Below are positions 1-64,000 of a DNA stretch of 64,000 nucleotides, in pieces. The stretch covers positions 10,540,001 through 10,604,000 of the forward strand of contig OZ059898.1 in the NCBI GenBank assembly GCA_964057225.1. The letters run 5' to 3'. Source of the DNA: Auanema rhodensis. Its lineage: Eukaryota > Animalia > Nematoda. The notes beneath the pieces were generated by a model. That model did not search any database. It had not been told where the DNA came from and saw nothing but the letters and a program-made list of their open reading frames with translations. A program made the translations under genes and the position numbers. The number at the start of each line of letters is the position of its first letter. The stretch's first letter is position 1.

Positions 1-39
1 TTATAAAATATAAATGATATTTTTTTAGAAAAGTGAAGT

Positions 40-110
40 TGCATCGGCCGGGAATCGAACCCGGGTCGCCCGCGTGGCAGGCGAGCATTCTAACACTGAA
101 CCACCGATGC
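40..110 (-). tRNA. trnG-GCC: tRNA-Gly(GCC), D-loop G19T variant
   Basis: 71-nt cloverleaf; D-loop AGTGTTA instead of AGTGGTA. Confidence 0.8.
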
Positions 111-1366
111 TTCGAAAATGTTATATTGTTTCCGAAAAATTATGAAAAGTCAAGTTCTACTGATTTGAAGAGAATTGTAAGTTTTAGAAAAGAATTAAAG
201 TTCAGCTATCTCTACTATTAACTGATTATCGGCTAAAATAAGGTAACAGTTTTTATTGAAAGTTTCCATGATTAAGATTAAACAAAGAAAAAAAATCAAA
301 GAGAAACACTTCTTGTTTACTTATTTGATTATAATACTTGAAATTCCAAAAACAGTAGAATAAAATTGAGAAAGCGACAAAAACAGTTGAACGATTTGAA
401 GAGAATTGTAAGTTTTAGAAAATAATTAAAAATTAGTTCTCTCTACTATTAACTGATTGTCGGCTAAAATATGGTAACATTTTTTATAAAAAGTTTCCAT
501 GATTAGGATTAAACAAAAAAAAAGAATCAAAAAGAAACACTTCTTGTTTACTTATTTGATTATAATACTTGAAATTCGAAAAAAAGTGAAAAACAATTGA
601 GAAAGCGACATAAACAGTTGAACGATTTGAAGAGAATTGTAAGTTTTAGAAAAGAATTAAAGTTCAGCTATCTGTACTATTAACTGATTATCGGCTAAAA
701 TAAGGTAACAGTTTTTATTGAAAGTTTCCATAATTAAGATTAAACAAAGAAAAAAAATCGAAGAGAAACACTTCTTGTTTACTTATTTGATTATAATACT
801 TGAAATTCTAAAAACAGTAGAATAAAATTGAGAAAGCGACAAAAACAGTTGAACGATTTGAAGAGAATTGTAAGTTTTAGAAAATAATTAAAAATTAGTT
901 CTCTCTACTATTAACTGATTGTCGGCTAAAATATGGTAACAGTTTTTATTAAAAGTTTCCATGACTAAGATTAAACAAAGAAAAAAAATCAAAGAGAAAC
1001 ACATCTTGTTTTCTAATTCGATTATAACAGTTGAAATTCCAACAAAAGTAAAGTAAAACTATTCAAGCGAGTAAGACTGTTGAACGATTTGAAGAGAATT
1101 GTAAGTATTAGAAAAAAATTAAAGTTTAGCTCTCTCTACTATTTAATGATTGTCGGCTAAAATATGGTAACAGTTTTTATTAAAAGTTTCCATGACTAAG
1201 ATTAAACAAAGAAAAAAAATCAAAGAGAAACACTTCTTGTTTCCTAATTTGATTATAACACTTGAAATTCCAACAAAAGTAAAGTAAAACTGTTAAAGCG
1301 AGTAAAACTGTTGAACTAAAACAGTCTTTATAAAATATAAATGATATTTTTTTATAAAAATGAAGT

Positions 1367-1437
1367 TGCATCGGCCGGGAATCGAACCCGGGTCGCCCGC
1401 GTGGCAGGCGAGCATTCTACCACTGAACCACCGATGC
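1367..1437 (-). tRNA. trnG-GCC: tRNA-Gly(GCC)
   Basis: GCATCGGTGGTTCAGTGGTAGAATGCTCGCCTGCCACGCGGGCGACCCGGGTTCGATTCCCGGCCGATGCA: full cloverleaf, A box and B box intact, no encoded CCA, T5 downstream. Confidence 0.95.
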
Positions 1438-1769
1438 TTCGAAAATGTTAGATTGTTTCCGAAAAATTATGAAAAGTCAAGTTCTACTGATTTGAAGAGA
1501 ATTGTAAGTTTTAGAAAAGAATTAAAGGTCAGCTATCTCTACTATTAACTGATTATCGGCTAAAATATGGTAACAGTTTTTATTAAAAGTTTCCATGATT
1601 AAGATTAAACAAAGAAAAAAAATCAAAGAGAAACACTTCTTGTTTACTAATTTGATTATAACACTTGAAAATCCAACAAAAGTAAAATAAAACTGTGAAA
1701 GCGGGTAAAACTGTTGAACTAAAACAGTCTTTATAAAATATAAATGATATTTTTTTAGAAAAGTGAAGT

Positions 1770-1840
1770 TGCATCGGCCGGGAATCGAACCCGGGTCGCC
1801 CGCGTGGCAGGCGAGCATTCTAACACTGAACCACCGATGC
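1770..1840 (-). tRNA. trnG-GCC: tRNA-Gly(GCC), G19T variant
   Basis: Same as 40-110. Confidence 0.8.
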
Positions 1841-3095
1841 TTCGAAAATGTTATATTGTTTCCGAAAAATTATGAAAAGTCAAGTTCTACTGATTTGAAG
1901 AGAATTGTAAGTTTTAGAAAAGAATTAAAGTTCAGCTATCTCTACTATTAACTGATTATCGGCTAAAATAAGGTAACAGTTTTTATTGAAAGTTTCCATG
2001 ATTAAGATTAAACAAAGAAAAAAAATCAAAGAGAAACACTTCTTGTTTACTTATTTGATTATAATACTTGAAATTCCAAAAACAGTAGAATAAAATTGAG
2101 AAAGCGACAAAAACAGTTGAACGATTTGAAGAGAATTGTAAGTTTTAGAAAATAATTAAAAATTAGTTCTCTCTACTATTAACTGATTGTCGGCTAAAAT
2201 ATGGTAACATTTTTTATAAAAAGTTTCCATGATTAGGATTAAACAAAAAAAAAGAATCAAAAAGAAACACTTCTTGTTTACTTATTTGATTATAATACTT
2301 GAAATTCGAAAAAAAGTGAAAAACAATTGAGAAAGCGACATAAACAGTTGAACGATTTGAAGAGAATTGTAAGTTTTAGAAAAGAATTAAAGTTCAGCTA
2401 TCTGTACTATTAACTGATTATCGGCTAAAATAAGGTAACAGTTTTTATTGAAAGTTTCCATAATTAAGATTAAACAAAGAAAAAAAATCGAAGAGAAACA
2501 CTTCTTGTTTACTTATTTGATTATAATACTTGAAATTCTAAAAACAGTAGAATAAAATTGAGAAAGCGACAAAAACAGTTGAACGATTTGAAGAGAATTG
2601 TAAGTTTTAGAAAATAATTAAAAATTAGTTCTCTCTACTATTAACTGATTGTCGGCTAAAATATGGTAACAGTTTTTATTAAAAGTTTCCATGACTAAGA
2701 TAAAACAAAGAAAAAAAATCAAAGAGAAACACATCTTGTTTTCTAATTCGATTATAACAGTTGAAATTCCAACAAAAGTAAAGTAAAACTATTCAAGCGA
2801 GTAAGACTGTTGAACGATTTGAAGAGAATTGTAAGTATTAGAAAAAAATTAAAGTTTAGCTCTCTCTACTATTTAATGATTGTCGGCTAAAATATGGTAA
2901 CAGTTTTTATTAAAAGTTTCCATGACTAAGATTAAACAAAGAAAAAAAATCAAAGAGAAACACTTCTTGTTTCCTAATTTGATTATAACACTTGAAATTC
3001 CAACAAAAGTAAAGTAAAACTGTTAAAGCGAGTAAAACTGTTGAACTAAAACAGTCTTTATAAAATATAAATGATATTTTTTATAAAAATGAAGT

Positions 3096-3166
3096 TGCAT
3101 CGGCCGGGAATCGAACCCGGGTCGCCCGCGTGGCAGGCGAGCATTCTACCACTGAACCACCGATGC
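3096..3166 (-). tRNA. trnG-GCC: tRNA-Gly(GCC)
   Basis: Majority sequence. Confidence 0.95.
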
Positions 3167-3498
3167 TTCGAAAATGTTAGATTGTTTCCGAAAAATTATG
3201 AAAAGTCAAGTTCTACTGATTTGAAGAGAATTGTAAGTTTTAGAAAAGAATTAAAGGTCAGCTATCTCTACTATTAACTGATTATCGGCTAAAATATGGT
3301 AACAGTTTTTATTAAAAGTTTCCATGATTAAGATTAAACAAAGAAAAAAAATCAAAGAGAAACACTTCTTGTTTACTAATTTGATTATAACACTTGAAAA
3401 TCCAACAAAAGTAAAATAAAACTGTGAAAGCGGGTAAAACTGTTGAACTAAAACAGTCTTTATAAAATATAAATGATATTTTTTTAGAAAAGTGAAGT

Positions 3499-3569
3499 TG
3501 CATCGGCCGGGAATCGAACCCGGGTCGCCCGCGTGGCAGGCGAGCATTCTAACACTGAACCACCGATGC
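3499..3569 (-). tRNA. trnG-GCC: tRNA-Gly(GCC), G19T variant
   Basis: Same as 40-110. Confidence 0.8.
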
Positions 3570-4824
3570 TTCGAAAATGTTATATTGTTTCCGAAAAATT
3601 ATGAAAAGTCAAGTTCTACTGATTTGAAGAGAATTGTAAGTTTTAGAAAAGAATTAAAGTTCAGCTATCTCTACTATTAACTGATTATCGGCTAAAATAA
3701 GGTAACAGTTTTTATTGAAAGTTTCCATGATTAAGATTAAACAAAGAAAAAAAATCAAAGAGAAACACTTCTTGTTTACTTATTTGATTATAATACTTGA
3801 AATTCCAAAAACAGTAGAATAAAATTGAGAAAGCGACAAAAACAGTTGAACGATTTGAAGAGAATTGTAAGTTTTAGAAAATAATTAAAAATTAGTTCTC
3901 TCTACTATTAACTGATTGTCGGCTAAAATATGGTAACATTTTTTATAAAAAGTTTCCATGATTAGGATTAAACAAAAAAAAAGAATCAAAAAGAAACACT
4001 TCTTGTTTACTTATTTGATTATAATACTTGAAATTCGAAAAAAAGTGAAAAACAATTGAGAAAGCGACATAAACAGTTGAACGATTTGAAGAGAATTGTA
4101 AGTTTTAGAAAAGAATTAAAGTTCAGCTATCTGTACTATTAACTGATTATCGGCTAAAATAAGGTAACAGTTTTTATTGAAAGTTTCCATAATTAAGATT
4201 AAACAAAGAAAAAAAATCGAAGAGAAACACTTCTTGTTTACTTATTTGATTATAATACTTGAAATTCTAAAAACAGTAGAATAAAATTGAGAAAGCGACA
4301 AAAACAGTTGAACGATTTGAAGAGAATTGTAAGTTTTAGAAAATAATTAAAAATTAGTTCTCTCTACTATTAACTGATTGTCGGCTAAAATATGGTAACA
4401 GTTTTTATTAAAAGTTTCCATGACTAAGATAAAACAAAGAAAAAAAATCAAAGAGAAACACATCTTGTTTTCTAATTCGATTATAACAGTTGAAATTCCA
4501 ACAAAAGTAAAGTAAAACTATTCAAGCGAGTAAGACTGTTGAACGATTTGAAGAGAATTGTAAGTATTAGAAAAAAATTAAAGTTTAGCTCTCTCTACTA
4601 TTTAATGATTGTCGGCTAAAATATGGTAACAGTTTTTATTAAAAGTTTCCATGACTAAGATTAAACAAAGAAAAAAAATCAAAGAGAAACACTTCTTGTT
4701 TCCTAATTTGATTATAACACTTGAAATTCCAACAAAAGTAAAGTAAAACTGTTAAAGCGAGTAAAACTGTTGAACTAAAACAGTCTTTATAAAATATAAA
4801 TGATATTTTTTATAAAAATGAAGT

Positions 4825-4895
4825 TGCATCGGCCGGGAATCGAACCCGGGTCGCCCGCGTGGCAGGCGAGCATTCTACCACTGAACCACCGATGC
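4825..4895 (-). tRNA. trnG-GCC: tRNA-Gly(GCC)
   Basis: Majority sequence. Confidence 0.95.
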
Positions 4896-5227
4896 TTCGA
4901 AAATGTTAGATTGTTTCCGAAAAATTATGAAAAGTCAAGTTCTACTGATTTGAAGAGAATTGTAAGTTTTAGAAAAGAATTAAAGGTCAGCTATCTCTAC
5001 TATTAACTGATTATCGGCTAAAATATGGTAACAGTTTTTATTAAAAGTTTCCATGATTAAGATTAAACAAAGAAAAAAAATCAAAGAGAAACACTTCTTG
5101 TTTACTAATTTGATTATAACACTTGAAAATCCAACAAAAGTAAAATAAAACTGTGAAAGCGGGTAAAACTGTTGAACTAAAACAGTCTTTATAAAATATA
5201 AATGATATTTTTTTAGAAAAGTGAAGT

Positions 5228-5298
5228 TGCATCGGCCGGGAATCGAACCCGGGTCGCCCGCGTGGCAGGCGAGCATTCTAACACTGAACCACCGATGC
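5228..5298 (-). tRNA. trnG-GCC: tRNA-Gly(GCC), G19T variant
   Basis: Same as 40-110. Confidence 0.8.
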
Positions 5299-6553
5299 TT
5301 CGAAAATGTTATATTGTTTCCGAAAAATTATGAAAAGTCAAGTTCTACTGATTTGAAGAGAATTGTAAGTTTTAGAAAAGAATTAAAGTTCAGCTATCTC
5401 TACTATTAACTGATTATCGGCTAAAATAAGGTAACAGTTTTTATTGAAAGTTTCCATGATTAAGATTAAACAAAGAAAAAAAATCAAAGAGAAACACTTC
5501 TTGTTTACTTATTTGATTATAATACTTGAAATTCCAAAAACAGTAGAATAAAATTGAGAAAGCGACAAAAACAGTTGAACGATTTGAAGAGAATTGTAAG
5601 TTTTAGAAAATAATTAAAAATTAGTTCTCTCTACTATTAACTGATTGTCGGCTAAAATATGGTAACATTTTTTATAAAAAGTTTCCATGATTAGGATTAA
5701 ACAAAAAAAAAGAATCAAAAAGAAACACTTCTTGTTTACTTATTTGATTATAATACTTGAAATTCGAAAAAAAGTGAAAAACAATTGAGAAAGCGACATA
5801 AACAGTTGAACGATTTGAAGAGAATTGTAAGTTTTAGAAAAGAATTAAAGTTCAGCTATCTGTACTATTAACTGATTATCGGCTAAAATAAGGTAACAGT
5901 TTTTATTGAAAGTTTCCATAATTAAGATTAAACAAAGAAAAAAAATCGAAGAGAAACACTTCTTGTTTACTTATTTGATTATAATACTTGAAATTCTAAA
6001 AACAGTAGAATAAAATTGAGAAAGCGACAAAAACAGTTGAACGATTTGAAGAGAATTGTAAGTTTTAGAAAATAATTAAAAATTAGTTCTCTCTACTATT
6101 AACTGATTGTCGGCTAAAATATGGTAACAGTTTTTATTAAAAGTTTCCATGACTAAGATTAAACAAAGAAAAAAAATCAAAGAGAAACACATCTTGTTTT
6201 CTAATTCGATTATAACAGTTGAAATTCCAACAAAAGTAAAGTAAAACTATTCAAGCGAGTAAGACTGTTGAACGATTTGAAGAGAATTGTAAGTATTAGA
6301 AAAAAATTAAAGTTTAGCTCTCTCTACTATTTAATGATTGTCGGCTAAAATATGGTAACAGTTTTTATTAAAAGTTTCCATGACTAAGATTAAACAAAGA
6401 AAAAAAATCAAAGAGAAACACTTCTTGTTTCCTAATTTGATTATAACACTTGAAATTCCAACAAAAGTAAAGTAAAACTGTTAAAGCGAGTAAAACTGTT
6501 GAACTAAAACAGTCTTTATAAAATATAAATGATATTTTTTATAAAAATGAAGT

Positions 6554-6592
6554 TGCATCGGCCGGGAATCGAACCCGGGTCGCCCGCGTGGC
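6554..6592 (-). pseudogene. tRNA-Gly 3'-half pseudogene (39 nt, begins at the anticodon)
   Basis: Match to the tRNA stops at the GCC anticodon; 5' half replaced by satellite-derived patchwork. Confidence 0.92.
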
Positions 6593-8359
6593 GACAATCA
6601 CAAAAGTAAAGTAAAACTATTCAAGCGAGTGAAACTGTTGAACTAAAACAATTAGATTGTTTCCGAAAAATTATGAAAAGTCAAGTTCTACTGATTTGAA
6701 GAGAATTGTAAGTTTTAGAAAAGAATTAAAGGTCAGCTATCTCTACTATTAACTGATTATCGGCTAAAATATGGTAACAGTTTTTATTAAAAGTTTCCAT
6801 GATTAAGATTAAACAAAGAAAAAAAATCAAAGAGAAACACTTCTTGTTTACTAATTTGATTATAATACTTGAAATTCCAAAAACAGTAGAATAAAATTGA
6901 GAAAGCGACAAAAACAGTTGAACGATTTGAAGAGAATTGTAAGTTTTAGAAAATAATTAAAAATTAGTTCTCTCTACTATTAACTGATTGTCGGCTAAAA
7001 TATGGTAACAGTTTTTATTAAAAGTTTCCATGATTAAGATTAAACAAAGAAAAAAAATCAAAGAGAAACACTTCTTGTTTACTAATTTGATTATAACACT
7101 TGAAAATCCAACAAAAGTAAAATAAAACTGTGAAAGCGGGTAAAACTGTTAAACGATTCGAAGAGAATTGTAAGTTTTAGAAAATAATTAAAAATTAGTT
7201 CTCTCTACTATTAACTGATTGTCGGCTAAAATATGGTAACATTTTTTATTGAAAGTTTCCATGATTAAGATTAAACAAAGAAAAAAAATCAAAGAGAAAC
7301 ACTTCTTGTTTACTTATTTGATTATAATACTTGAAATTCCAAAAACAGTAGAATAAAATTGAGAAAGCGACAAAAACAGTTGAACGATTTGAAGAGAATT
7401 GTAAGTTTTAGAAAATAATTAAAAATTAGTTCTCTCTACTATTAACTGATTGTCGGCTAAAATATGGTAACATTTTTTATAAAAAGTTTCCATGATTAGG
7501 ATTAAACAAAAAAAAAGAATCAAAAAGAAACACTTCTTGTTTACTTATTTGATTATAAAACTTGAAATTCGAAAAAAAGTAAAAAACAATTGAGAAAGCG
7601 ACATAAACAGTTGAACGATTTGAAGAGAATTGTAAGTTTTAGAAAATAATTAAAAATTAGTTCTCTGTACTATTAACTGATTATCGGCTAAAATAAGGTA
7701 ACAGTTTTTATTGAAAGTTTCCATAATTAAGATTAAACAAAGAAAAAAAATCGAAGAGAAACACTTCTTGTTTACTTATTTGATTATAATACTTGAAATT
7801 CGAAAAAAAGTAAAAAACAATTGAGAAAGCGACATAAACAGTTGAACGATTTGAAGAGAATTGTAAGTTTTAGAAAATAATTAAAAATTAGTTCTCTCTA
7901 CTATTAACTGATTGTCGGCTAAAATATGGTAACATTTTTTATAAAAAGTTTCCATGATTAGGATTAAACAAAGAAAAAGAATCATAAAGAAACACTTCTT
8001 GTTTACTTATTCGATTATAACAGTTGAAATTCCAACAAAAGTAAAGTAAAACTATTCAAGCGAGTAAGACTGTTGAACGATTTGAAGACAATTGTAAGTT
8101 GAAGAAAAAAATTAAAGTTTAGCTCTCTCTACTATTAACTGATTGTCGGCTAAAATATGGTAACAGTTTTTATTAAAAGTTTCCATGACTAAGATTAAAC
8201 AAAGAAAAAAAATCAAAGAGAAACACTTCTTGTTTCCTAATTTGATTATAACACTTGAAATTCCAACAAAAGTAAAGTAAAACTGTTAAAGCGAGTAAAA
8301 CTGTTGAACTAAAACAGTCTTTATAAAATATAAATGATATTTTTTTATAAAAATGAAGT

Positions 8360-8430
8360 TGCATCGGCCGGGAATCGAACCCGGGTGGCCCGCGTGGCAG
8401 GCGAGCATTCTACCACTGAACCACCGATGC
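8360..8430 (-). tRNA. trnG-GCC: tRNA-Gly(GCC), variable-loop variant (CCAC for CGAC)
   Basis: + strand CCGGGTGGCC instead of CCGGGTCGCC. Confidence 0.85.
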
Positions 8431-9002
8431 TTCGAAAATGTTAGATTGTTTCCGAAAAATTATGAAAAGTCAAGTTCTACTGATTTGAAGAGAATTGTAA
8501 GTTTTAGAAAAGAATTAAAGGTCAGCTATCTCTACTATTAACTGATTATCGGCTAAAATATGGTAACAGTTTTTATAAAAAGTTTCCATGATTAGGATTA
8601 AACAAAAAAAAAGAATCATAAAGAAACACTTCTTGTTTACTAATTTGATTATAACACTTGAAAATCCAACAAAAGTAAAATAAAACTGTGAAAGCGGGTA
8701 AAACTGTTAAAACAGTTGAACGATTTGAAGAGAATTGTAAGTTTTAGAAAATAATTAAAAATTAGTTCTCTCTACTATTAACTGATTGTCGGCTAAAATA
8801 TGGTAACATTTTTTATAAAAAGTTTCCATGATTAAGATTAAACAAAGAAAAAAAATCAAAGAGAAACACTTCTTGTTTACTAATTTGATTATAACACTTG
8901 AAAATCCAACAAAAGTAAAATAAAACTGTGAAAGCGGGTAAAACTGTTGAACTAAAACAGTCTTTATAAAATATAAATGATATTTTTTTAGAAAAGTGAA
9001 GT

Positions 9003-9073
9003 TGCATCGGCCGGGAATCGAACCCGGGTCGCCCGCGTGGCAGGCGAGCATTCTAACACTGAACCACCGATGC
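9003..9073 (-). tRNA. trnG-GCC: tRNA-Gly(GCC), G19T variant
   Basis: Same as 40-110. Confidence 0.8.
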
Positions 9074-10327
9074 TTCGAAAATGTTATATTGTTTCCGAAA
9101 AATTATGAAAAGTCAAGTTCTACTGATTTGAAGAGAATTGTAAGTTTTAGAAAAGAATTAAAGTTCAGCTATCTCTACTATTAACTGATTATCGGCTAAA
9201 ATAAGGTAACAGTTTTTATTGAAAGTTTCCATGATTAAGATTAAACAAAGAAAAAAAATCAAAGAGAAACACTTCTTGTTTACTTATTTGATTATAATAC
9301 TTGAAATTCCAAAAACAGTAGAATAAAATTGAGAAAGCGACAAAAACAGTTGAACGATTTGAAGAGAATTGTAAGTTTTAGAAAATAATTAAAAATTAGT
9401 TCTCTCTACTATTAACTGATTGTCGGCTAAAATATGGTAACATTTTTTATAAAAAGTTTCCATGATTAGGATTAAACGAAAAAAAGAATCAAAAAGAAAC
9501 ACTTCTTGTTTACTTATTTGATTATAATACTTGAAATTCGAAAAAAAGTGAAAAACAATTGAGAAAGCGACATAAACAGTTGAACGATTTGAAGAGAATT
9601 GTAAGTTTTAGAAAAGAATTAAAGTTCAGCTATCTGTACTATTAACTGATTATCGGCTAAAATAAGGTAACAGTTTTTATTGAAAGTTTCCATAATTAAG
9701 ATTAAACAAAGAAAAAAAATCGAAGAGAAACACTTCTTGTTTACTTATTTGATTATAATACTTGAAATTCTAAAAACAGTAGAATAAAATTGAGAAAGCG
9801 ACAAAAACAGTTGAACGATTTGAAGAGAATTGTAAGTTTTAGAAAATAATTAAAAATTAGTTCTCTCTACTATTAACTGATTGTCGGCTAAAATATGGTA
9901 ACAGTTTTTATTAAAAGTTTCCATGACTAAGATTAAACAAAGAAAAAAAATCAAAGAGAAACACATCTTGTTTTCTAATTCGATTATAACAGTTGAAATT
10001 CCAACAAAAGTAAAGTAAAACTATTCAAGCGAGTAAGACTGTTGAACGATTTGAAGAGAATTGTAAGTATTAGAAAAAAATTAAAGTTTAGCTCTCTCTA
10101 CTATTTAATGATTGTCGGCTAAAATATGGTAACAGTTTTTATTAAAAGTTTCCATGACTAAGATTAAACAAAGAAAAAAAATCAAAGAGAAACACTTCTT
10201 GTTTCCTAATTTGATTATAACACTTGAAATTCCAACAAAAGTAAAGTAAAACTGTTAAAGCGAGTAAAACTGTTGAACTAAAACAGTCTTTATAAAATAT
10301 AAATGATATTTTTTATAAAAATGAAGT

Positions 10328-10366
10328 TGCATCGGCCGGGAATCGAACCCGGGTCGCCCGCGTGGC
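10328..10366 (-). pseudogene. tRNA-Gly 3'-half pseudogene
   Basis: Same lesion as 6554-6592. Confidence 0.92.
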
Positions 10367-11670: not shown

Positions 11671-11741
11671 TGCATCGGCCGGGAATCGAACCCGGGTCGC
11701 CCGCGTGGCAGGCGAGCATTCTACCACTGAACCACCGATGC
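11671..11741 (-). tRNA. trnG-GCC: tRNA-Gly(GCC)
   Basis: Majority sequence. Confidence 0.95.
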
Positions 11742-12304: not shown

Positions 12305-12375
12305 TGCATCGGCCGGGAATCGAACCCGGGTGGCCCGCGTGGCAGGCGAGCATTCTACCACTGAACCACCGATGC
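12305..12375 (-). tRNA. trnG-GCC: tRNA-Gly(GCC), variable-loop variant
   Basis: Same as 8360-8430. Confidence 0.85.
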
Positions 12376-14272: not shown

Positions 14273-14311
14273 TGCATCGGCCGGGAATCGAACCCGGGTC
14301 GCCCGCGTGGC
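14273..14311 (-). pseudogene. tRNA-Gly 3'-half pseudogene
   Basis: Same lesion as 6554-6592. Confidence 0.92.
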
Positions 14312-51669: not shown

Positions 51670-51740
51670 GCATCGGTGGTTCAGTGGTAGAATGCTCGCC
51701 TGCCACGCGGGCGACCCGGGTTCGATTCCCGGCCGATGCA
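51670..51740 (+). tRNA. trnG-GCC: tRNA-Gly(GCC)
   Basis: Majority sequence. Confidence 0.95.
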
Positions 51741-52994: not shown

Positions 52995-53065
52995 GCATCG
53001 GTGATTCAGTGGTAGAATGCTCGCCTGCCACGCGGGCGACCCGGGTTCGATTCCTGGCCGATGCA
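52995..53065 (+). tRNA. trnG-GCC: tRNA-Gly(GCC), G10A+C63T variant
   Basis: Same as 33560. Confidence 0.85.
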
Positions 53066-54783
53066 ACTTCATTTTTATAAAAAAATATCATTTATATTTT
53101 ATAAAGACTGTTTTAGTTCAACAGTTTTACTCGCTTTAACAGTTTTACTTTACTTTTGTTGGAATTTCAAGTGTTATAATCAAATTAGGAAACAAGAAGT
53201 GTTTCTCTTTGATTTTTTTTCTTTGTTTAATCTTAATCATGGAAACTTTTAATAAAAACTGTTACCATATTTTAGCCGACAATCAGTTAATAGTAGAGAG
53301 AGCTAAACTTTATTTTTTTTCTTAAACTTACAATTGTCTTCAAATCGCTCAACTTTTTTCGTCGCTTTCTCTATTTTATTCTACTGTTTTTGGAATTTCA
53401 AGTATTATAATCAAATAAGTAAACAAGAAGTGTTTCTCTTTGATTTTTTTTCTTTGTTTAATCTTAATCATGGAAACTTTCAATAAAAACTGTTACCTTA
53501 TTTTAGCCGATAATCAGTTAATAGTAGAGATAGGTGAACTTTAATTCTTTTCTAAAACTTACAATTGTCTTCAAATCGTTCAACAGTCTTGCTCGCTTGA
53601 ATAGTTTTACTTTACTTTTGTTGGAATTTCAACTGTTATAATCAAATTAGAAAACAAGAAGTGTTTCTCTTTGATTTTTTTTCTTTGTTTAATCTTAGTC
53701 ATGGAAACTTTTAATAAAAACTGTTACCATATTTTAGCCGACAATCAGTTAATAGTAGAGAGAGCTAAACTTTAATTTTTTTCTTCAACTTACAATTGTC
53801 TTCAAATCGTTCAACAGTTTTACTCGCTTGAATAGTTTTACTTTACTTTTGTTGGAATTTCAAGTGTTATAATCAAATTAGAAAACAAGAAGTGTTTCTC
53901 TTTGATTTTTTTTCTTTGTTTAATCTTAATCATGGAAACTTTTAATAAAAACTGTTACCATATTTTAGCCGACAATCAGTTAATAGTAGAGAGAGCTAAA
54001 CTTTATTTTTTTTCTTAAACTTACAATTGTCTTCAAATCGCTCAACTTTTTTCGTCGCTTTCTCTATTTTATTCTACTGTTTTTGGAATTTCAAGTATTA
54101 TAATCAAATAAGTAAACAAGAAGTGTTTCTCTTTGATTTTTTTTCTTTGTTTAATCTTAATCATGGACACTTTCAATAAAAACTGTTACCTTATTTTAGC
54201 CGATAATCAGTTAATAGTAGAGATAGCTGAACTTTAATTCTTTTCTAAAACTTACAATTCTCTTCAAATCGTTCAACAGTTTTACTCGCTTGAATAGTTT
54301 TACTTTACTTTTGTTGGAATTTCAAGTGTTATAATCAAATTAGAAAACAAGAAGTGTTTCTCTTTGATTTTTTTTCTTTGTTTAATCTTAATCATGGAAA
54401 CTTTTAATAAAAACTGTTACCATATTTTAGCCGACAATCAGTTAATAGTAGAGAGAGCTAAACTTTAATTTTTTTCTTCAACTTACAATTGTCTTCAAAT
54501 CGTTCAACAGTTTTACTCGCTTGAATAGTTTTACTTTACTTTTGTTGGAATTTCAAGTGTTATAATCAAATTAGAAAACAAGAAGTGTTTCTCTTTGATT
54601 TTTTTTCTTTGTTTAATCTTAATCATGGAAACTTTTAATAAAAACTGTTACCATATTTTAGCCGACAATCAGTTAATAGTAGAGAGAGCTGAACTTTAAT
54701 TCTTTTCTAAAATTTACAATTCTCTTCAAATCAGTAGAACTTGACTTTTCATAATTTTTCGGAAACATTCTAACATTTTCGAA

Positions 54784-54854
54784 GCATCGGTGGTTCAGTG
54801 GTAGAATGCTCGCCTGCCACGCGGGCGACCCGGGTTCGATTCCCGGCCGATGCA
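54784..54854 (+). tRNA. trnG-GCC: tRNA-Gly(GCC)
   Basis: Majority sequence. Confidence 0.95.
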
Positions 54855-56110
54855 ACTTCATTTTTATAAAAAAATATCATTTATATTTTATAAAGACTGT
54901 TTTAGTTCAACAGTTTTACTCGCTTTAACAGTTTTACTTTACTGTTTTTGGAATTTCAAGTATTATAATCAAATAAGTAAACAAGAAGTGTTTCTCTTTG
55001 ATTTTTTTTCTTTGTTTAATCTTAATCATGGAAACTTTTAATAAAAACTGTTACCATATTTTAGCCGACAATCATTAAATAGTAGAGAGAGCTAAACTTT
55101 AATTTTTTTCTAATACTTACAATTGTCTTCAAATCGTTCAACAGTTTTACTCGCTTGAATAGTTTTACTTTACTTTTGTTGGAATTTCAAGTGTTATAAT
55201 CAAATTAGAAAACAAGAAGTGTTTCTCTTTGATTTTTTTTCTTTGTTTAATCTTAATCATGGAAACTTTTAATAAAAACTGTTACCATATTTTAGCCGAC
55301 AATCAGTTAATAGTAGAGAGAGCTAAACTTTAATTTTTTTCTTCAACTTACAATTGTCTTCAAATCGTTCAACAGTCTTGCTCGCTTGAATAGTTTTACT
55401 TTACTTTTGTTGGAATTTCAACTGTTATAATCAAATTAGAAAACAAGAAGTGTTTCTCTTTGATTTTTTTTCTTTGTTTAATCTTAGTCATGGAAACTTT
55501 TAATAAAAACTGTTATCATATTTTAGCCGACAATCAGTTAATAGTAGAGAGAGCTAAACTTTAATTTTTTTCTTCAACTTACAATTGTCTTCAAATCGTT
55601 CAACAGTTTTACTCGCTTGAATAGTTTTACTTTACTTTTGTTGGAATTTCAAGTGTTATAATCAAATTAGAAAACAAGAAGTGTTTCTCTTTGATTTTTT
55701 TTCTTTGTTTAATCTTAATCATGGAAACTTTTAATAAAAACTGTTATCATATTTTAGCCGACATTCAGTTAATAGTAGAGAGAGCTAAACTTTAATTTTT
55801 TTCTTCAACTTACAATTGTCTTCAAATCGTTCAACAGTTTTACTCGCTTGAATAGTTTTACTTTACTTTTGTTGGAATTTCAAGTGTTATAATCAAATTA
55901 GAAAACAAGAAGTGTTTCTCTTTGATTTTTTTTCTTTGTTTAATCTTAATCATGAAAACTTTTGATAAAAACTGTTACCATATTTTAGCCGATAATCAGT
56001 TAATAGTAGAGAGAGCTAAACTTTATTTTTTTTCTTAAACTTACAATTGTCTTCAAATCAGTAGAACTTGACTTTTCATAATTTTTCGGAAACAATCTAA
56101 CATTTTCGAA

Positions 56111-56181
56111 GCATCGGTGGTTCAGTGGTAGAATGCTCGCCTGCCACGCGGGCGACCCGGGTTCGATTCCCGGCCGATGCA
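56111..56181 (+). tRNA. trnG-GCC: tRNA-Gly(GCC)
   Basis: Majority sequence. Confidence 0.95.
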
Positions 56182-57206
56182 ACTTCATTTTTATAAAAAA
56201 ATATCATTTATATTTTATAAAGACTGTTTTAGTTCAACAGTTTTACTCGCTTTAACAGTTTTACTTTACTTTTGTTGGAATTTCAAGTGTTATAATCAAA
56301 TTAGGAAACAAGAAGTGTTTCTCTTTGATTTTTTTTCTTTGTTTAATCTTAGTCATGGAAACTTTTAATAAAAACTGTTACCATATTTTAGCCGACAATC
56401 AGTTAATAGTAGAGAGAGCTAAACTTTAATTTTTTTCTTCAACTTACAATTGTCTTCAAATCGTTCAACAGTCTTGCTCGCTTGAATAGTTTTACTTTAC
56501 TTTTGTTGGAATTTCAACTGTTATAATCAAATTAGAAAACAAGAAGTGTTTCTCTTTGATTTTTTTTCTTTGTTTAATCTTAATCATGGAAACTTTTAAT
56601 AAAAACTGTTACCATATTTTAGCCGACAATCATTAAATAGTAGAGAGAGCTAAACTTTAATTTTTTTCTAATACTTACAATTCTCTTCAAATCGTTCAAC
56701 TGTTTTTGTCGCTTTCTCAATTTTATTCTACTGTTTTTGGAATTTCAAGTATTATAATCAAATAAGTAAACAAGAAGTGTTTCTCTTTGATTTTTTTTCT
56801 TTGTTTAATCTTAATCATGGAAACTTTTAATAAAAACTGTTACCATATTTTAGCCGACAATCATTAAATAGTAGAGAGAGCTAAACTTTAATTTTTTTCT
56901 AATACTTACAATTCTCTTCAAATCGTTCAACTGTTTTTGTCGCTTTCTCAATTTTATTCTAGTGTTTTTGGAATTTCAAGTATTATAATCAAATAAGTAA
57001 ACAAGAAGTGTTTCTCTTTGATTTATTTTCTTTGTTTAATCTTAATCATGGAAACTTTCAATAAAAACTGTTACCTTATTTTAGCCGATAATCAGTTAAT
57101 AGTAGAGATAGCTGAACTTTAATTCTTTTCTAAAACTTACAATTCTCTTCAAATCAGTAGAACTTGACTTTTCATAATTTTTCGGAAACAATCTAACATT
57201 TTCGAA

Positions 57207-57277
57207 GCATCGGTGGTTCAGTGGTAGAATGCTCGCCTGCCACGCGGGCGACCCGGGTTCGATTCCCGGCCGATGCA
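57207..57277 (+). tRNA. trnG-GCC: tRNA-Gly(GCC)
   Basis: Majority sequence. Confidence 0.95.
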
Positions 57278-57837
57278 ACTTCATTTTTATAAAAAAATAT
57301 CATTTATATTTTATAAAGACTGTTTTAGTTCAACAGTTTCACTCGCTTTAACAGTTTTACTTTACTTTTGTTGGAATTTCAAGTGTTATAATCAAATTAG
57401 GAAACAAGAAGTGTTTCTCTTTGATTTTTTTTTGTTTAATCTTAATCATGGAAACTTTTAATAAAAACTGTTACCATATTTTAGCCGACAATCAGTTAAT
57501 AGTAGAGAGAGCTAAACTTTATTTTTTTTCTTAAACTTACAATTGTCTTCAAATCGCTCAACTTTTTTCGTCGCTTTCTCTATTTTATTCTACTGTTTTT
57601 GGAATTTCAAGTATTATAATCAAATAAGTAAACAAGAAGTGTTTCTCTTTGATTTTTTTTCTTTGTTTAATCTTAATCATGGAAACTTTCAATAAAAACT
57701 GTTACCTTATTTTAGCCGATAATCAGTTAATAGTAGAGATAGCTGAACTTTAATTCTTTTCTAAAACTTACAATTCTCTTCAAATCAGTAGAACTTGACT
57801 TTTCATAATTTTTCGGAAACAATCTAACATTTTCGAA

Positions 57838-57908
57838 GCATCGGTGGTTCAGTGGTAGAATGCTCGCCTGCCACGCGGGCGACCCGGGTTCGATTCCCGG
57901 CCGATGCA
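57838..57908 (+). tRNA. trnG-GCC: tRNA-Gly(GCC)
   Basis: Majority sequence. Confidence 0.95.
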
Positions 57909-59163
57909 ACTTCATTTTTATAAAAAAATATCATTTATATTTTATAAAGACTGTTTTAGTTCAACAGTTTTACTCGCTTTAACAGTTTTACTTTACTTTT
58001 GTTGGAATTTCAAGTGTTATAATCAAATTAGGAAACAAGAAGTGTTTCTCTTTGATTTTTTTTCTTTGTTTAATCTTAATCATGGAAACTTTCAATAAAA
58101 ACTGTTACCTTATTTTAGCCGATAATCAGTTAATAGTACAGATAGCTAAACTTTAATTTTTTTCTTCAACTTACAATTGTCTTCAAATCGTTCAACAGTT
58201 TTACTCGCTTGAATAGTTTTACTTTACTTTTGTTGGAATTTCAAGTGTTATAATCAAATTAGAAAACAAGAAGTGTTTCTCTTTGATTTTTTTTCTTTGT
58301 TTAATCTCAATCATGGAAACTTTTAATAAAAACTGTTATCATATTTTAGCCGACAATCATTAAATAGTAGAGAGAGCTAAACTTTAATTTTTTTCTAATA
58401 CTTACAATTCTCTTCAAATCGTTCAACTGTTTTTGTCGCTTTCTCAATTTTATTCTACTGTTTTTGGAATTTCAAGTATTATAATCAAATACGTAAACAA
58501 GAAGTGTTTCTCTTTGATTTTTTTCTTTGTTTAATCTTAATCATGGAAACTTTTAATAAAAACTGTTACCATATTTTAGCCGACAATCATTAAATAGTAG
58601 AGAGAGCTAAACTTTATTTTTTTTCTAATACTTACAATTCTCTTCAAATCGTTCAACTGTTTTTGTCGCTTTCTCAATTTTATTCTACTGTTTTTGGAAT
58701 TTCAAGTATTATAATCAAATAAGTAAACAAGAAGTGTTTCTCTTTGATTTTTTTTCTTTGTTTAATCTTAATCATGGAAACTTTTAATAAAAACTGTTAC
58801 CATATTTTAGCCGACAATCATTAAATAGTAGAGAGAGCTAAACTTTAATTTTTTTCTAATACTTACAATTCTCTTCAAATCGTTCAACTGTTTTTGTCGC
58901 TTTCTCAATTTTATTCTAGTGTTTTTGGAATTTCAAGTATTATAATCAAATAAGTAAACAAGAAGTGTTTCTCTTTGATTTATTTACTTTGTTTAATCTT
59001 AATCATGGAAACTTTCAATAAAAACTGTTACCTTATTTTAGCCGATAATCAGTTAATAGTAGAGATAGCTGAACTTTAATTCTTTTCTAAAACTTACAAT
59101 TCTCTTCAAATCAGTAGAACTTGACTTTTCATAATTTTTCGGAAACAATCTAACATTTTCGAA

Positions 59164-59234
59164 GCATCGGTGGTTCAGTGGTAGAATGCTCGCCTGCCAC
59201 GCGGGCGACCCGGGTTCGATTCCCGGCCGATGCA
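59164..59234 (+). tRNA. trnG-GCC: tRNA-Gly(GCC)
   Basis: Majority sequence. Confidence 0.95.
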
Positions 59235-59797
59235 ACTTCATTTTTATAAAAAAATATCATTTATATTTTATAAAGACTGTTTTAGTTCAACAGTTTTACT
59301 CGCTTTAACAGTTTTACTTTACTTTTGTTGGAATTTCAAGTGTTATAATCAAATTAGGAAACAAGAAGTGTTTCTCTTTGATTTTTTTTCTTTGTTTAAT
59401 CTCAATCATGGAAACTTTTAATAAAAACTGTTATCATATTTTAGCCGACAATCATTAAATAGTAGAGAGAGCTAAACTTTAATTTTTTTCTAATACTTAC
59501 AATTCTCTTCAAATCGTTAAACTGTTTTTGTCGCTTTCTCAATTTTATTCTACTGTTTTTGGAATTTCAAGTATTATAATCAAATAAGTAAACAAGAAGT
59601 GTTTCTCTTTGATTTTTTTTCTTTGTTTAATCTTAATCATGGAAACTTTTAATAAAAACTGTTACCTTATTTTAGCCGATAATCAGTTAATAGTAGAGAT
59701 AGCTGAACTTTAATTCTTTTCTAAAACTTACAATTCTCTTCAAATCAGTAGAACTTGACTTTTCATAATTTTTCGGAAACAATCTAACATTTTCGAA

Positions 59798-59865
59798 GCA
59801 TCGGTGGTTCAGTGGTAGAATGCTCGCATACGCTGGCGACCCGGGTTCGATTCCCGGCCGATGCA
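59798..59865 (+). pseudogene. tRNA-Gly pseudogene with destroyed anticodon loop (68 nt)
   Basis: CTCGC-ATAC-GCTGG replaces CTCGC-CTGCCAC-GCGGG; A and B boxes intact. Confidence 0.9.
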
Positions 59866-60659
59866 ACTTCATTTTTAAAAAAAAATATCATTTATATTTT
59901 ATAAAGACTGTTTTAGTTCAACAGTTTTACTCGCTTTAACAGTTTTACTTTACTTTTGTTGGAATTTCAAGTGTTATAATCAAATTAGGAAACAAGAAGT
60001 GTTTCTTTTTGATTCTTTTTTTTGTTTAATCCTAATCATGGAAACTTTTAATAAAAACTATTACCATATTTTAGCCGACAATCATTAAATAGTAGAGAGA
60101 GCTAAACTTTAATTTTTTTCTAATACTTACAATTCTCTTCAAATCGTTCAACTGTTTTTGTCGCTTTCTCAATTTTATTCTACTGTTTTTAAGAATTTCA
60201 AGTATTATAATCAAATAAGTAAACAAGAAGTGTTTCTCTTTGATTTTTTTTCTTTGTTTAATCTTAATTATGGAAACTTTCAATAAAAACTGTTACCTTA
60301 TTTTAGCCGATAATCAGTTAATAGTACAGCTAGCTGAACTTTAATTCTTTTCTAAAACTTACAATTCTCTTCAAATCGTTCAACTGTTTATGTCGCTTTC
60401 TCAATTGTTTTTTACTTTTTTTCGAATTTCAAGTATTATAATCAAATAAGAAAACAAGAAGTGTTTCTTTTTGATTCTTTTTTTTTGTTTAATCCTAATC
60501 ATGGAAACTTTTTATAAAAAATGTTACCATATTTTAGCCGACAATCAGTTAATAGTAGAGAGAACTAATTTTTAATTATTTTCTAAAACTTACAATTCTC
60601 TTCAAATCAGTAGAACTTGCCTTTTCATAATTTTTCGGAAACAATCTAACATTTTCGAA

Positions 60660-60730
60660 GCATCGGTGGTTCAGTGGTAGAATGCTCGCCTGCCACGCGG
60701 GCGACCCGGGTTCGATTCCCGGCCGATGCA
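60660..60730 (+). tRNA. trnG-GCC: tRNA-Gly(GCC)
   Basis: Majority sequence; T4 trailer. Confidence 0.95.
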
Positions 60731-61524
60731 ACTTCACTTTTCTAAAAAAATATCATTTATATTTTATAAAGACTGTTTTAGTTCAACAGTTTTACCCGCT
60801 TTCACAGTTTTATTTTACTTTTGTTGGATTTTCAAGTGTTATAAACAAATTAGTGAACAAGAAGTGTTTCTCTTTGATTTTTTTTCTTTGTTTAATCTTA
60901 ATCATGGAAACTTTTAATAAAAACTGTTACCATATTTTAGCCGACAATCAGTTAATAGTAGAGAGAGCTAAACTTTAATTGTTCTCTAAAACTTACAATT
61001 GTCTTCAAATCGTTCAACAGTTTTACTCGCTTCAACAGTTTTACTTTACTTTTGTTGGAATTTCAAGTATTATAATCAAATTAGGAAACAAGAAGTGTTT
61101 CTTTTTGATTTTTTTTCTTTGTTTAATCTTAATCATGGAAACTTTTAATAAAAACTGTTACCATATTTTAGCCGACAATCAGTTAATAGTAGAGAGAGCT
61201 AAACTTTATTTTTTTTCTTAAACTTACAATTGTCTTCAAATCGCTCAACTTTTTTCGTCGCTTTCTCTATTTTATTCTACTGTTTTTGGAATTTCAAGTA
61301 TTATAATCAAATAAGTAAACAAGAAGTGTTTCTCTTTGATTTTTTTTCTTTGTTTAATCTTAATCATGGAAACTTTCAATAAAAACTGTTACCTTATTTT
61401 AGCCGATAATCAGTTAATAGTAGAGATAGCTGAACTTTAATTCTTTTCTAAAACTTACAATTCTCTTCAAATCAGTAGAACTTGACTTTTCATAATTTTT
61501 CGGAAACAATCTAACATTTTCGAA

Positions 61525-61595
61525 GCATCGGTGGTTCAGTGGTAGAATGCTCGCCTGCCACGCGGGCGACCCGGGTTCGATTCGCGGCCGATGCA
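61525..61595 (+). tRNA. trnG-GCC: tRNA-Gly(GCC), C62G variant, probable pseudogene
   Basis: GTTCGATTCGCGG breaks the G52:C62 T-stem pair. Confidence 0.7.
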
Positions 61596-62184
61596 ACTTC
61601 ATTTTTATAAAAAAATATCATTTATATTTTATAAAGACTGTTTTAGTTCAACAGTTGTACTCGTTTTAACAGTTTTACTTTACTTTTGTTGGAATTTCAA
61701 GTGTTATAATCAAATTAGTAAACAAGAAGTGTTTCTCTTTGATTTTTTTTCTTTGTTTAATCTTAATCACGGAAACTTTCAATAAAAACTGTTACCTTAT
61801 TTTAGCCGTTAATCAGTTAAAAGTAGAGAGAGCTGAACTTTAATTCTTTTCTAAAACTTACAATTCTCTTCAAATCGTTCAACTGTTTATGTTGCTTTCT
61901 CAATTGTTTTTTACTTTTTTTTTGAATTTCAAGTATTATAATCAAGTAAGTAAACAAGAAGTGTTTCTTTTTGATTATAACACTTGAAATTCCAACAAAA
62001 GGCAAAACATTGTTCAATCCTAATCATGGAAACTTTTTATAAGAACTGTTACCATATTTTAGCCGACAATCAGTTAATAGTAGAGAGAACTAATTTTTAA
62101 TTATTTTCTAAAACTTACAATTCTCTTCAAATCAGTAGAACTTGACTTTTCATAGTTTTTCGGAAACAATCTAACATTTTCGAA

Positions 62185-62245
62185 GCATCGGTGGTTCAGT
62201 GGTAGAATGCTCGCCTGCCACGCGGTTCGATTCCCGGCCGATGCA
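62185..62245 (+). pseudogene. tRNA-Gly pseudogene with 10-nt deletion (variable loop and 5' T stem)
   Basis: CACGCGGTTCGA versus CACGCGGGCGACCCGGGTTCGA. Confidence 0.9.
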
Positions 62246-64000
62246 ACTTCACTTTTATAAAAAAATATCATTTATATTTTATAAAGACTGTTTTAGTTCA
62301 ACAGTTTTACCCGCTTTCACAGTTTTATTTTACTTTTGTTGGATTTTCAAGTGTTATAATCAAATTAGTAAACAAGAAGTGTTTCTCTTTGATTTTTTTC
62401 TTTGTTTAATTTTAATCATGGAAACTTTTAATAAAAACTGTTACCATATTTTAGAAGTCAATCAGTTAATAGTAGAGAGAGCTGAACTTTAATTTTTTTC
62501 TTCAACTTACAATTGTCTTCAAATCGTTCAACAGTTTTACTCGCTTTAACAGTTTTACTTTACTTTTGTTGGAATTTCAAGTGTTATAATCAAATAAGTA
62601 AACAAGAAGTGTTTCTCTTTGATTTTTTCTACTTTGTTTAATCTTAATCACGGAAACTTTCAATAAAAACTGTTACCTTATTTTAGCCGATAATCAGTCA
62701 ATGGTAGAGATAGCTGAACTTTAATTCTTTTTTAAAACTTACAATTCTCTTCAAATCGTTCAATTTTTTTCGTCGCTTTCTCTATTTTATTCTACTGTTT
62801 TTGGAATTTCAAGCATTATAATCAAATAAGTAAACAAGAAGTGTTTCTCTTTGATTTTTTTTCTTTGTTTAATCTTAATCACGGAAACTTTCAATAAAAA
62901 CTGTTACCTTATTTTAGCCGTTAATCAGTTAAAAGTAGAGATAGCTGAACTTTAATTCTTTTCTAAAACTTACAATTCTCTTCAAATCGTTCAACTGTTT
63001 ATGTCGCATTCTCAATTGTTTTTTACTTTTTTTCGAATTTCAAGTATTATAATCAAGTAAGTAAACAAGAAGTGTTTCTCTTTGATTCTTTTCTTTGTTT
63101 AATCTTAGTCATGGAAACTTTTAATAAAAACTGTTACCATATTTTAGCCGACAATCATTAAATAGTAGAGAGAGCTAAACTTTAATTTTTTTCTAATACT
63201 TACAATTCTCTTCAAATCGTTCAACAGTCTTACTCGCTTGAATAGTTTTACTTTACTTTTGTTGGAATTTCAACTGTTATAATCGAATTAGAAAACAAGA
63301 TGTGTTTCTCTTTGATTATTTTTCTTTGTTTAATCTTAATCATGGAAACTTTTAATAAAAACTGTTACCATATTTTAGCCGACAATCATTAAATAGTAGA
63401 GAGAGCTAAACTTTAATTTTTTTCTAATACTTACAATTCTCTTCAAATCGTTCAACTGTTTTTGTCGCTTTCTCAATTTTATTCTACTGTTTTTAGAATT
63501 TCAAGTATTATAATCAAATAAGTAAACAAGAAGTGTTTCTCTTCGATTTTTTTTCTTTGTTTAATCTTAATTATGGAAACTTTCAATAAAAACTGTTACC
63601 TTATTTTAGCCGATAATCAGTCAATGGTAGAGATAGCTGAACTTTATTTCTTTTTTAAAACTTACAATTCTCTTCAAATCGTTCAATTTTTTTCATCGCT
63701 TTCTCTATTTTATTCTACTGTTTTTGGAATTTCAAGCATTATAATCAAATTAGTAAACAAGAAGTGTTTCTCTTTGATTTTTTTTCTTTGTTTAATCTTA
63801 ATCACGGAAACTTTCAATAAAAACTGTTACCTTATTTTAGCCGTTAATCAGTTAAAAGTAGAGATAGCTGAACTTTAATTCTTTTCTAAAACTTACAATT
63901 CTCTTCAAATCGTTCAACTGTTTATGTTGCTTTCTCAATTGTTTTTTACTTTTTTTTTGAATTTCAAGTATTATAATCAAGTAAGTAAACAAGAAGTGTT

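Follow-up and report, generated by a model that had tools for sequence, protein, structure and literature searches.

A tRNA-Gly(GCC) cassette at a single site of a 231-bp satellite monomer: a probable passenger of satellite turnover

We describe a satellite array of AT-rich 231-bp monomers in which a minority of the monomer junctions carry a 172-bp cassette with a tRNA-Gly(GCC) gene, found in a window of 64 kb (the whole stretch of DNA that was analysed). The explanation that we favour, and consider reasonably probable, is that the gene is a passenger, carried by a satellite with higher-order structure and multiplied through unequal exchange. It is important to point out that this explanation is drawn from the sequence of 64 kb of what may be a much larger array.

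Results and Discussion

Structure of the array

The satellite array spans ca 55.2 kb of the 64-kb window, and 201 full 231-bp monomers were counted across these ca 55 kb. An earlier note on this DNA had described the array as filling the window. The array is real, but it does not cover 64 kb, because positions 18,976–27,712 are taken up by a CR1-LINE/Polinton island; neither this island nor an inversion of the array had been mentioned. Both window ends cut through the array, which continues past each of them.

The reference monomer (162..392, + strand) is AT-rich, belongs to no Rfam family and has no homology to the cassette, and most monomers are 86–100% identical to it. Cassette-free stretches have a GC content of ca 26%, and no Rfam family was found in one such stretch of five monomers. 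Another option considered was that cassette and monomer are homologous, or that a decayed tRNA is hidden within the monomer; it was rejected, as nothing exceeded the shuffled sequences and the empty monomers are without an Rfam family. The open reading frames across the array are short frames derived from the repeat, and so are the 98-aa frames that span the tRNA. No nematode telomere repeat was found across the 64-kb window, and a 27-mer of the monomer had no matches in the JGI metagenomes.

The monomers fall into 5–7 subfamilies, with a nucleotide diversity (π) of 0.015 within subfamilies vs 0.10–0.15 between them, and they are organised in higher-order repeat blocks with periods of 1729, 1961, 3945 and 5134 bp, which resemble one another more closely than adjacent monomers do. 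With its head-to-tail non-coding monomers and subfamily blocks, the array is satellite DNA with higher-order repeats. The left arm (1..18975) has its monomers on the + strand and its tRNA genes on the − strand, and contains 20 cassettes and higher-order periods of 1729–1730 and 3945 bp. Beyond the island there is a short piece in the left-arm orientation (27713..28457, + strand), with one cassette, whose tRNA (27831–27901) is a C72A variant, and a 49-bp cassette stub (28409–28457). At 28448..28457 this stub meets an oppositely oriented monomer, which marks an inversion breakpoint, and the right arm (28448..64000) follows with its monomers on the − strand, 28 cassettes, and higher-order periods of 1961 bp, 5134 bp and ca 15.7 kb. 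The inversion at ca 28,448–28,457 is thus the reason why the tRNA genes lie on the − strand on the left and on the + strand on the right.

The tRNA-Gly(GCC) cassette

In the 64-kb window, ARAGORN finds 45 tRNA genes and Rfam 46 tRNA matches, and the 3′ half-gene cassettes at 6505, 10279 and 14224 complete a total of exactly 49. A chance origin is excluded by the Rfam E-values, which go down to 2.7e-12 per copy, together with the high identity of the monomers. The count of 49 copies with 29 identical ones, given in the earlier note, was thereby confirmed, the 29 sharing one canonical 71-mer (as at 1367..1437, − strand) that is the canonical animal tRNA-Gly(GCC) sequence. The identical 71-mer also occurs in the contigs L003, L004, L005 and L008, where flanks and GC content are unrelated, which makes the tRNA useless for indicating the taxon; none of the contigs resembled human DNA. 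A search for the tRNA pattern among viral contigs gave 0 matches.

The reference cassette (1317..1488, − strand) consists of a 51-bp leader, the 71-bp gene and a 50-bp trailer with a T5 terminator. The A box, the B box and an oligo-T terminator are present, as had been noted; the terminator is a T5 run at +7, shortened to T4 in nine copies. The claim of a single invariant site holds: all cassettes sit at the junction GTTGAAC^GATTTGAAG or its one-base variant. A cassette is found at 47 of the 198 scored junctions (ca 24%). The proposed spacing rule of n × 231 + 172 describes 40 of the 46 within-array spacings to within 3 bp, but not the other six (643, 643, 660, 1342, 1342 and 1343), for which small indels account. 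The commonest spacing corresponds to five monomers (18/46), the range is 1–10 monomers, and only four spacings equal the 403-bp unit.

While 36 of the 49 copies appear usable, the other 13 are damaged. A G19U variant with a lesion in the A box/D-loop (1770..1840, − strand) is present in six copies (at 40, 1770, 3499, 5228, 9003 and 12948); it is linked to the T4 terminator and has been amplified within the 1729-bp higher-order repeat. In the 188-bp broken cassette (6505..6692, − strand), which accounts for the three half-genes, the 5′ half of the tRNA has given way to ca 55 bp of sequence duplicated from the end of the monomer and the start of the cassette, and the B box is kept in all three. 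Amplification inside higher-order repeats has thus also hit damaged types. On the + strand, a G10A + C63U variant (33560..33630) occurs in five copies (33560, 35521, 37481, 47861 and 52995) and keeps its cloverleaf pairs. Also on this strand are a pseudogene without its anticodon loop (59798..59865), a C62G copy with a broken T-stem pair (61525..61595), and a pseudogene with a 10-nt deletion from the anticodon stem to the T arm (62185..62245).

The π of the cassette is 0.012, comparable to that of the monomers within subfamilies, and its parts are similar to each other (leader 0.009, gene 0.012, trailer 0.013). Mutation events counted by hand number 9 in 71 nt of gene vs 11 in 101 nt of flanks (p=0.8), so that, in a test with little power (20 events), the gene does not appear better conserved within the array than the leader and trailer beside it. 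Earlier or array-level selection may nevertheless have acted, being compatible with the canonical majority gene and the 36 usable-looking copies. Redundancy lowers selection per copy even in functioning gene families. The low cassette diversity was also considered as proof of a recent insertion, an argument that was dropped since every monomer subfamily is equally uniform.

Origin of the cassette

A cassette-type haplotype on both flanks is found at 40 of the 47 filled junctions vs none of the 151 empty ones, which also means that no precise empty allele with this haplotype is present among those 151. Near the junction, π is 0.041 for the filled units vs 0.129 for the empty ones, where the minimum of 1000 random subsets is 0.109. 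The junctions are blunt, with no target-site duplication or tail at the cassette, which retains 51 bp of DNA upstream of +1 and ends 50 bp past the gene. This pattern points to a single origin of the cassette.

As to the direction of the event, the best repeat bracketing the cassette (6/8, p=0.105) is marginal and leans towards deletion, while a stretch at the start of the cassette that repeats flank sequence (8/9, p=0.057) is also marginal and leans towards templated insertion. Support for the junction tree is poor, and recombination confounds the direction of origin. We give slightly better than even chances to the satellite having captured a tRNA gene, and chances somewhat below even to the reverse, in which an older tRNA array with a 403-bp unit lost the gene by deletion and thereby gave rise to the satellite. 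A more specific version of the latter, which we hold to be improbable, is that the satellite is nascent from a 403-bp tRNA-Gly array through one 172-bp deletion, and that the remaining genes are still transcribed or TFIIIC-bound in the germline and determine the chromatin or the stability of a repeat block that may itself be confined to the germline. In that reading, the empty spacer would have displaced the gene-bearing units.

Comparison of the possible explanations

We now turn our attention to the passenger explanation. One junction lineage of the satellite would bear a complete Pol III unit, and filled and empty junctions would differ by a single event at the DNA level, not by retroposition. 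Blocks of 1–10 monomers would then be duplicated and reshuffled, presumably by unequal crossing-over and gene conversion, and the cassette would be carried along. The copies would be sequence-competent but without individual selection, and would thus decay and amplify whatever their state. Selection would probably be weak because the region is heterochromatic or germline-restricted; LINE and Polinton debris breaks up the array. As argued in a preprint on A. rhodense, repeats including tRNA arrays build up where selection is weak (bioRxiv 10.64898/2026.08.27.747507).

The earlier note had proposed a satellite-driven amplification of one Gly isoacceptor, serving the glycine demand of a collagen-rich animal. 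The mechanism agrees with our results, namely one origin and higher-order spread, but the purpose is not supported: the gene does not appear more constrained than its flanks, and damage, which affects 13 of the 49 copies, did not keep such copies from being amplified. If the host is Auanema-like, the arrays may moreover be confined to the germline, in which case the collagen-making soma would lack them. In a wider form, the array would be kept for the supply of tRNA-Gly(GCC), with a germline or maternal store likelier than collagen. In favour of this are the 29 canonical copies, in which both boxes and a terminator are present, and the self-contained nature of the unit (−51 to +50); the clustered tRNA genes of zebrafish Chr4R have also been hypothesised to serve a maternal role (PMC10723407). 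However, the lack of constraint relative to the flanks and the damaged copies among those amplified count here as well, and an array in which three quarters of the units are without the gene is a poor design for dosage. We therefore regard this alternative as unlikely. It is quite unlikely, too, that the array is a structural domain, in which spaced B boxes would recruit TFIIIC/condensin or form barriers and thereby organise the satellite, whether mature tRNA is made or not. tDNA barriers are known in S. pombe; nematodes are holocentric, and the S. pombe centromere setting is thus not directly transferable. The semi-regular spacing with its mode of five monomers and the B box retained in the half-genes would fit such a role, and the human 1q23.3 tRNA repeat has been suggested to act as a boundary (PMC4041453). 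The spacing, however, follows from the copying of higher-order blocks and varies over 1–10 monomers, and two copies (61525 and 62185) have lesions in or beside the B box.

The invariant site and the sharp presence/absence could also suggest that the cassette is a mobile element, either SINE-like or DNA-based, which is still active and targets the monomer junction time after time. This is highly improbable given the one flank haplotype, the absence of a target-site duplication, terminal repeat or tail, the inclusion of 51 bp of upstream DNA, the lack of any copy off-site, and the empty allele of the same haplotype at 0/151 junctions. A tRNA-derived SINE in particular was rejected: the 5′ end is not at +1, and there is no 3′ tail, no target-site duplication and no independent insertion. 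Finally, over-expansion or collapse in the assembly might be considered, since several higher-order blocks are near-identical across kilobases. Yet the 201 monomers comprise 97 distinct sequences, subfamily frequencies differ between the arms, and distant blocks share nested variants, which makes an artefact barely credible. The local copy number could be off; the architecture cannot come from the assembly.

Relation to known tRNA arrays

The earlier note did not recognise this family as described. Massive tandem tRNA arrays of nematodes are in fact published (PMC5765664; bioRxiv 10.64898/2026.08.27.747507), but we found no report of a layout in which a satellite monomer either has or lacks a tRNA cassette. 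No 231/403-bp case was found in the literature on tRNA-carrying satellites that was covered, which mostly excludes subscription journals. For A. rhodense, the preprint gives 19,554 annotated tRNA genes, repeat units of 167–504 nt, arrays in which several tRNA loci are combined, and repeat DNA that includes genes derived from TEs; satellites and tRNA arrays are described there as separate classes, without a monomer that has or lacks a cassette, and its running text does not mention 231 or 403 (bioRxiv 10.64898/2026.08.27.747507). The A. rhodense FISH probes AT-1, XR-1, XT-1 and XT-2 had no match in the window with 3 mismatches allowed, in a comparison of repeat families that left out AT-2, AC-I to AC-VI, XR-2 and XC.

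In Nippostrongylus brasiliensis, tRNA-Trp and tRNA-Ser genes are part of very long complex tandem repeats, and the likeness is that, in a nematode, a tRNA gene of one isoacceptor is repeated 90–150 times with a species-specific spacer (PMC5765664). Here, too, one intact gene occurs in many tandem copies (49, 29 of them canonical). In Nippostrongylus the gene is in every unit as described (PMC5765664), whereas here ca 76% of the units lack it (47/198 filled), and the empty units make up a satellite that has its own subfamilies and higher-order organisation. Entamoeba also has tRNA genes in tandemly repeated AT-rich DNA that is homogenised within the array; its units always contain 1–5 tRNA genes, with microsatellite-like repeats between them in E. 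histolytica and E. dispar (PMC2652664). The spacer in the window is instead a 231-bp satellite with an optional gene. The analogy to Entamoeba in the earlier note therefore fails twice: most units are without the gene and there are no short tandem repeats, the TRF periods within the array being solely 225–240 bp, multiples thereof, or 403–404 bp. The human 1q23.3 tRNA VNTR is likewise a copy-variable tandem repeat bearing tRNA genes, but its GC-rich unit of 7.3 kb includes a conserved CTCF site besides several tRNA genes, and no empty units are described (PMC4041453). Tandem tRNA-Gly(GCC) clusters were also found in the metagenome contigs L001, L003 and L008 (spacings of ca 374, 270–363 and 837 bp); the gene is the same or near-identical, but the spacers are unrelated and, on these short contigs, there are no empty spacer monomers.

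One gene hitchhiking on satellite turnover would be a concrete route to huge tRNA counts such as that of A. rhodense, and cautions against equating tRNA gene copy number in such genomes with translational demand. Adjacent filled and empty units offer a built-in control for Pol III gene activity in satellite chromatin, and their contrast also bears on effects on recombination or elimination and on the birth of satellites from gene-array spacers. If the copies are silent, this would be ordinary concerted evolution.

The transposon island

The island that had been missed is 8.7 kb long (18,976–27,712). It starts with a 5′-truncated LINE of the CR1/L2 type (18976..20614, − strand; RVT_1, E 9e-40), with a frameshift near 19.6–19.7 kb, whose 3′ tail adjoins the first bases of a cassette. 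The relatives of its reverse transcriptase have identities of at most 44%, with named matches that include Meloidogyne, Caenorhabditis and Schistosoma. The rest (20613..27712) consists of rearranged Polinton/Maverick remnants, which include the C-terminus of an integrase with chromodomain (20613–21169), a fragment of a family-B polymerase (24290–24568), five TIR-like ends and an inverted duplication (22554–23184/27084–27714).

Searches with the fragmented LINE and Polintons took each piece by itself, with frameshifted pieces and spliced exons left unjoined. The chromodomain and polymerase fragments gave no match in word-index searches, longer relatives being beyond the reach of such searches, and nothing was confirmed for the polymerase fragment among viral contigs. 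The Polinton fragment has its closest relative in Auanema sp. JU1783 (66% aa, 64% nt), and the next well-aligned matches are at most 57%. The host is probably a nematode, with chances somewhat below even for an Auanema-like one. Polintons can cross between species. The AT-rich intron-like segments of 45–67 nt are in keeping with nematodes generally.

Array structure

A tandem array of an AT-rich 231-bp monomer occupies about 55.2 kb of the window, and nearly all bases outside 18,976-27,712 are explained by tiling with one monomer and one 172-bp tRNA-Gly(GCC) cassette, both taken from the window. Among the 201 full monomers there are 97 different sequences, with 5-7 subfamilies at each monomer end (π 0.015 within and 0.10-0.15 between them) whose frequencies differ by arm. 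Higher-order blocks measure 1729 and 3945 bp in the left arm (1-18975) and 1961, 5134 and ca 15,700 bp in the right arm (28448-64000). On both features testable here, the array is satellite DNA with higher-order repeats. Diversity is highest at monomer positions ca 22-63 and 190-231, which flank the cassette site (π up to 0.21), and positions 85-147 are almost invariant (π ca 0.04), being either a core that is conserved or a zone where crossovers preferentially fall. Small insertions that look templated from nearby monomer sequence are seen at 6505-6692, 8712-8721, 27764-27780 and 61877-62133, and we take them to resemble polymerase-theta end-joining scars.

The cassette and satellite feature is real, and the earlier note described it accurately. 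ARAGORN finds 45 tRNA genes in the window and Rfam 46, and three further cassettes in which the gene is reduced to its 3' half (at 6505, 10279 and 14224) give exactly the 49 copies that had been claimed; the count of 29 identical copies is likewise exact. All cassettes share one junction site, as had been stated, and consist of a 51-bp leader, a 71-bp gene and a 50-bp trailer, with the reported A and B boxes and oligo-T terminator present (T5 at +7). A cloverleaf-like fold is obtained for the majority gene. The proposed spacing of n × 231 + 172 holds within 3 bp for 40 of the 46 spacings (n = 1-10, mode 5), small indels being responsible for the other six. What has to be amended is the extent, since the array does not fill 1-64000 but is interrupted by an 8.7-kb island, and its inversion had gone unmentioned.

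Spread of the cassette and its origin

Cassette-type sequence on both flanks is found at 40 of 47 filled junctions and at none of the 151 empty ones. The junction-adjacent diversity is 0.041 for filled and 0.129 for empty junctions, and as copies inside higher-order blocks are non-independent, duplicates were also removed, which keeps the contrast (0.049 versus 0.128). Some one monomer from filled junctions, diversity is back at background level. One junction lineage is the home of the cassette. Another subfamily's flank occurs at a few filled junctions, indicating exchange right up to the heterology. Retroposition and repeated insertion were rejected, because the cassette includes the leader and lacks a target-site duplication, a tail and terminal repeats; a mobile cassette is very improbable, and an assembly artefact slightly more so. 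Going by established concerted-evolution theory, a single DNA-level event followed by spread through unequal exchange would account for the pattern.

As to direction, we estimate the chance that a tRNA gene was captured into the satellite at a little better than even, and the chance that an older array of 403-bp tRNA units lost the gene by deletion at somewhat under even, with a small remainder for other routes. Capture is favored by a consensus that is canonical although no selection is visible, by a filled flank only 2 of 32 bases off one empty subfamily (against differences of as many as 12 among the empty subfamilies themselves), and by the beginning of the cassette, where 8 of 9 bases are copied from flank close by (p=0.057), much like the templated inserts at 6505, 8712 and 27,764. 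Deletion draws on the commonness of tandem tRNA genes (contigs L001, L003 and L008; PMC5765664), on the lack of an empty pre-insertion allele in the window, and on a repeat that flanks the cassette on both sides with 6/8 matches (p=0.105). The low cassette diversity leaves the direction undecided, because all subfamilies are equally uniform.

Selection and function

Leader, gene and trailer of the cassette have π values of 0.009, 0.012 and 0.013, respectively, and by hand count there are 9 mutation events in the 71 nt gene and 11 in the 101 nt flank (p=0.8), a comparison of low power. With variants numbered, and their consequences judged, by standard tRNA structure, 13 copies are probably damaged (G19U in six, half-gene in three, and C62G, C72A, an anticodon-loop deletion and a 10-nt deletion in one each), and seven carry changes that are probably tolerated (five G10A+C63U, two G45C). 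G19U and half-gene copies were propagated within higher-order repeats, so amplification does not depend on whether the gene is intact, subject to the low power, the redundancy and the intact consensus. Weak per-copy selection is expected for any redundant gene family, and the consensus gene is still identical to that in contigs unrelated to the window.

The best explanation is probably that of a passenger tRNA gene amplified through satellite turnover. A germline or maternal dosage role for the cassettes seems unlikely, and a TFIIIC/condensin domain formed by them marginally less likely still. The argument from collagen and glycine demand found no support, and would be contradicted if the array were germline-restricted. 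The finding would be of greater interest should the satellite prove to have arisen out of a tRNA array whose remaining genes are still active.

Nematode tandem tRNA arrays are known from N. brasiliensis, with ca 150 tRNA-Trp and 90 tRNA-Ser copies (PMC5765664), and from A. rhodense, which has 19,554 tRNA genes, repeat units of 167-504 nt, and tRNA arrays in soma-eliminated DNA, where weak selection was suggested as the cause of repeat pile-up (10.64898/2026.08.27.747507). The present array works alike, but those arrays, as described, have a gene in every unit, which this one does not; from Entamoeba arrays (PMC2652664) it departs in both tested features. The four published A. rhodense probes have no match in the window, and no description of a with/without-cassette layout was found in the literature searched. 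Tandem tRNA-Gly(GCC) genes also occur at L001:435-880, L003:1-713 and L008:589-1496 (the last a two-copy repeat of ca 837 bp), and several second copies there carry lesions, as do copies in the window.

Island and inversion

The island (18,976-27,712) begins with a 5'-truncated, frameshifted CR1/L2-type LINE on the minus strand (18976-20614; RVT_1, E 9e-40), whose reverse transcriptase has at most 44% identity among the best matches, named relatives including Meloidogyne and Caenorhabditis at ca 41%. The 3' tail of the LINE, short and repeated, is similar to the opening bases of the adjoining cassette, as would be expected for microhomology-primed insertion. At ca 20,614 it joins nested, rearranged Polinton/Maverick remnants (20613-27712) with an integrase-chromodomain C-terminus, a family-B polymerase fragment, inverted duplications, and 56-bp and 30-bp minisatellites; the broken genes were searched as separate pieces, with exons and frameshifted parts unjoined. 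Five TIR-like ends with the terminus AGTAGAGAGCC end at 23635, 24316 and 25482 or start at 25736 and 26581, without matching target-site duplications; one directly adjoins the polymerase fragment. A 631-bp inverted repeat (22554-23184 and 27084-27714, 98% complementarity) stops on its right arm exactly where the satellite resumes.

Some 740 bp beyond the island, the whole array is inverted at 28,448-28,457, where GC and AT skew flip, and the tRNA genes consequently point outward in both arms. This break and the LINE junction (18,975) both lie within a cassette trailer, so that both large rearrangements begin in the cassette 3' flank.

Searched against 1.8 billion representatives, the integrase-chromodomain fragment has a single relative that stands out, CAI4220397.1 from Auanema sp. 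JU1783 (66% identity, E 3.6e-31); the remaining whole-query matches reach at most 57%. The DNA identity is only 64%, which makes the JU1783 Polinton a related element and not the same one. Taken with the reverse-transcriptase relatives and the intron-like segments, this makes a nematode source likely and places an Auanema-like rhabditid somewhat short of even odds, an assignment limited by the fact that nematode Polintons are reported to cross species (10.1101/2022.07.12.499685). A Polinton-like block at L013:7709-21110, on an ENA metagenome contig, has an integrase with chromodomain, an ATPase-like gene and a large zinc-finger/endonuclease-VII ORF, and was used only for identifying the integrase fragment in the window. 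Intron-like, AT-rich segments 45-67 nt long also occur in the Polinton region; some of them close with a run of T followed by AG, and short AT-rich introns of this kind fit nematodes.
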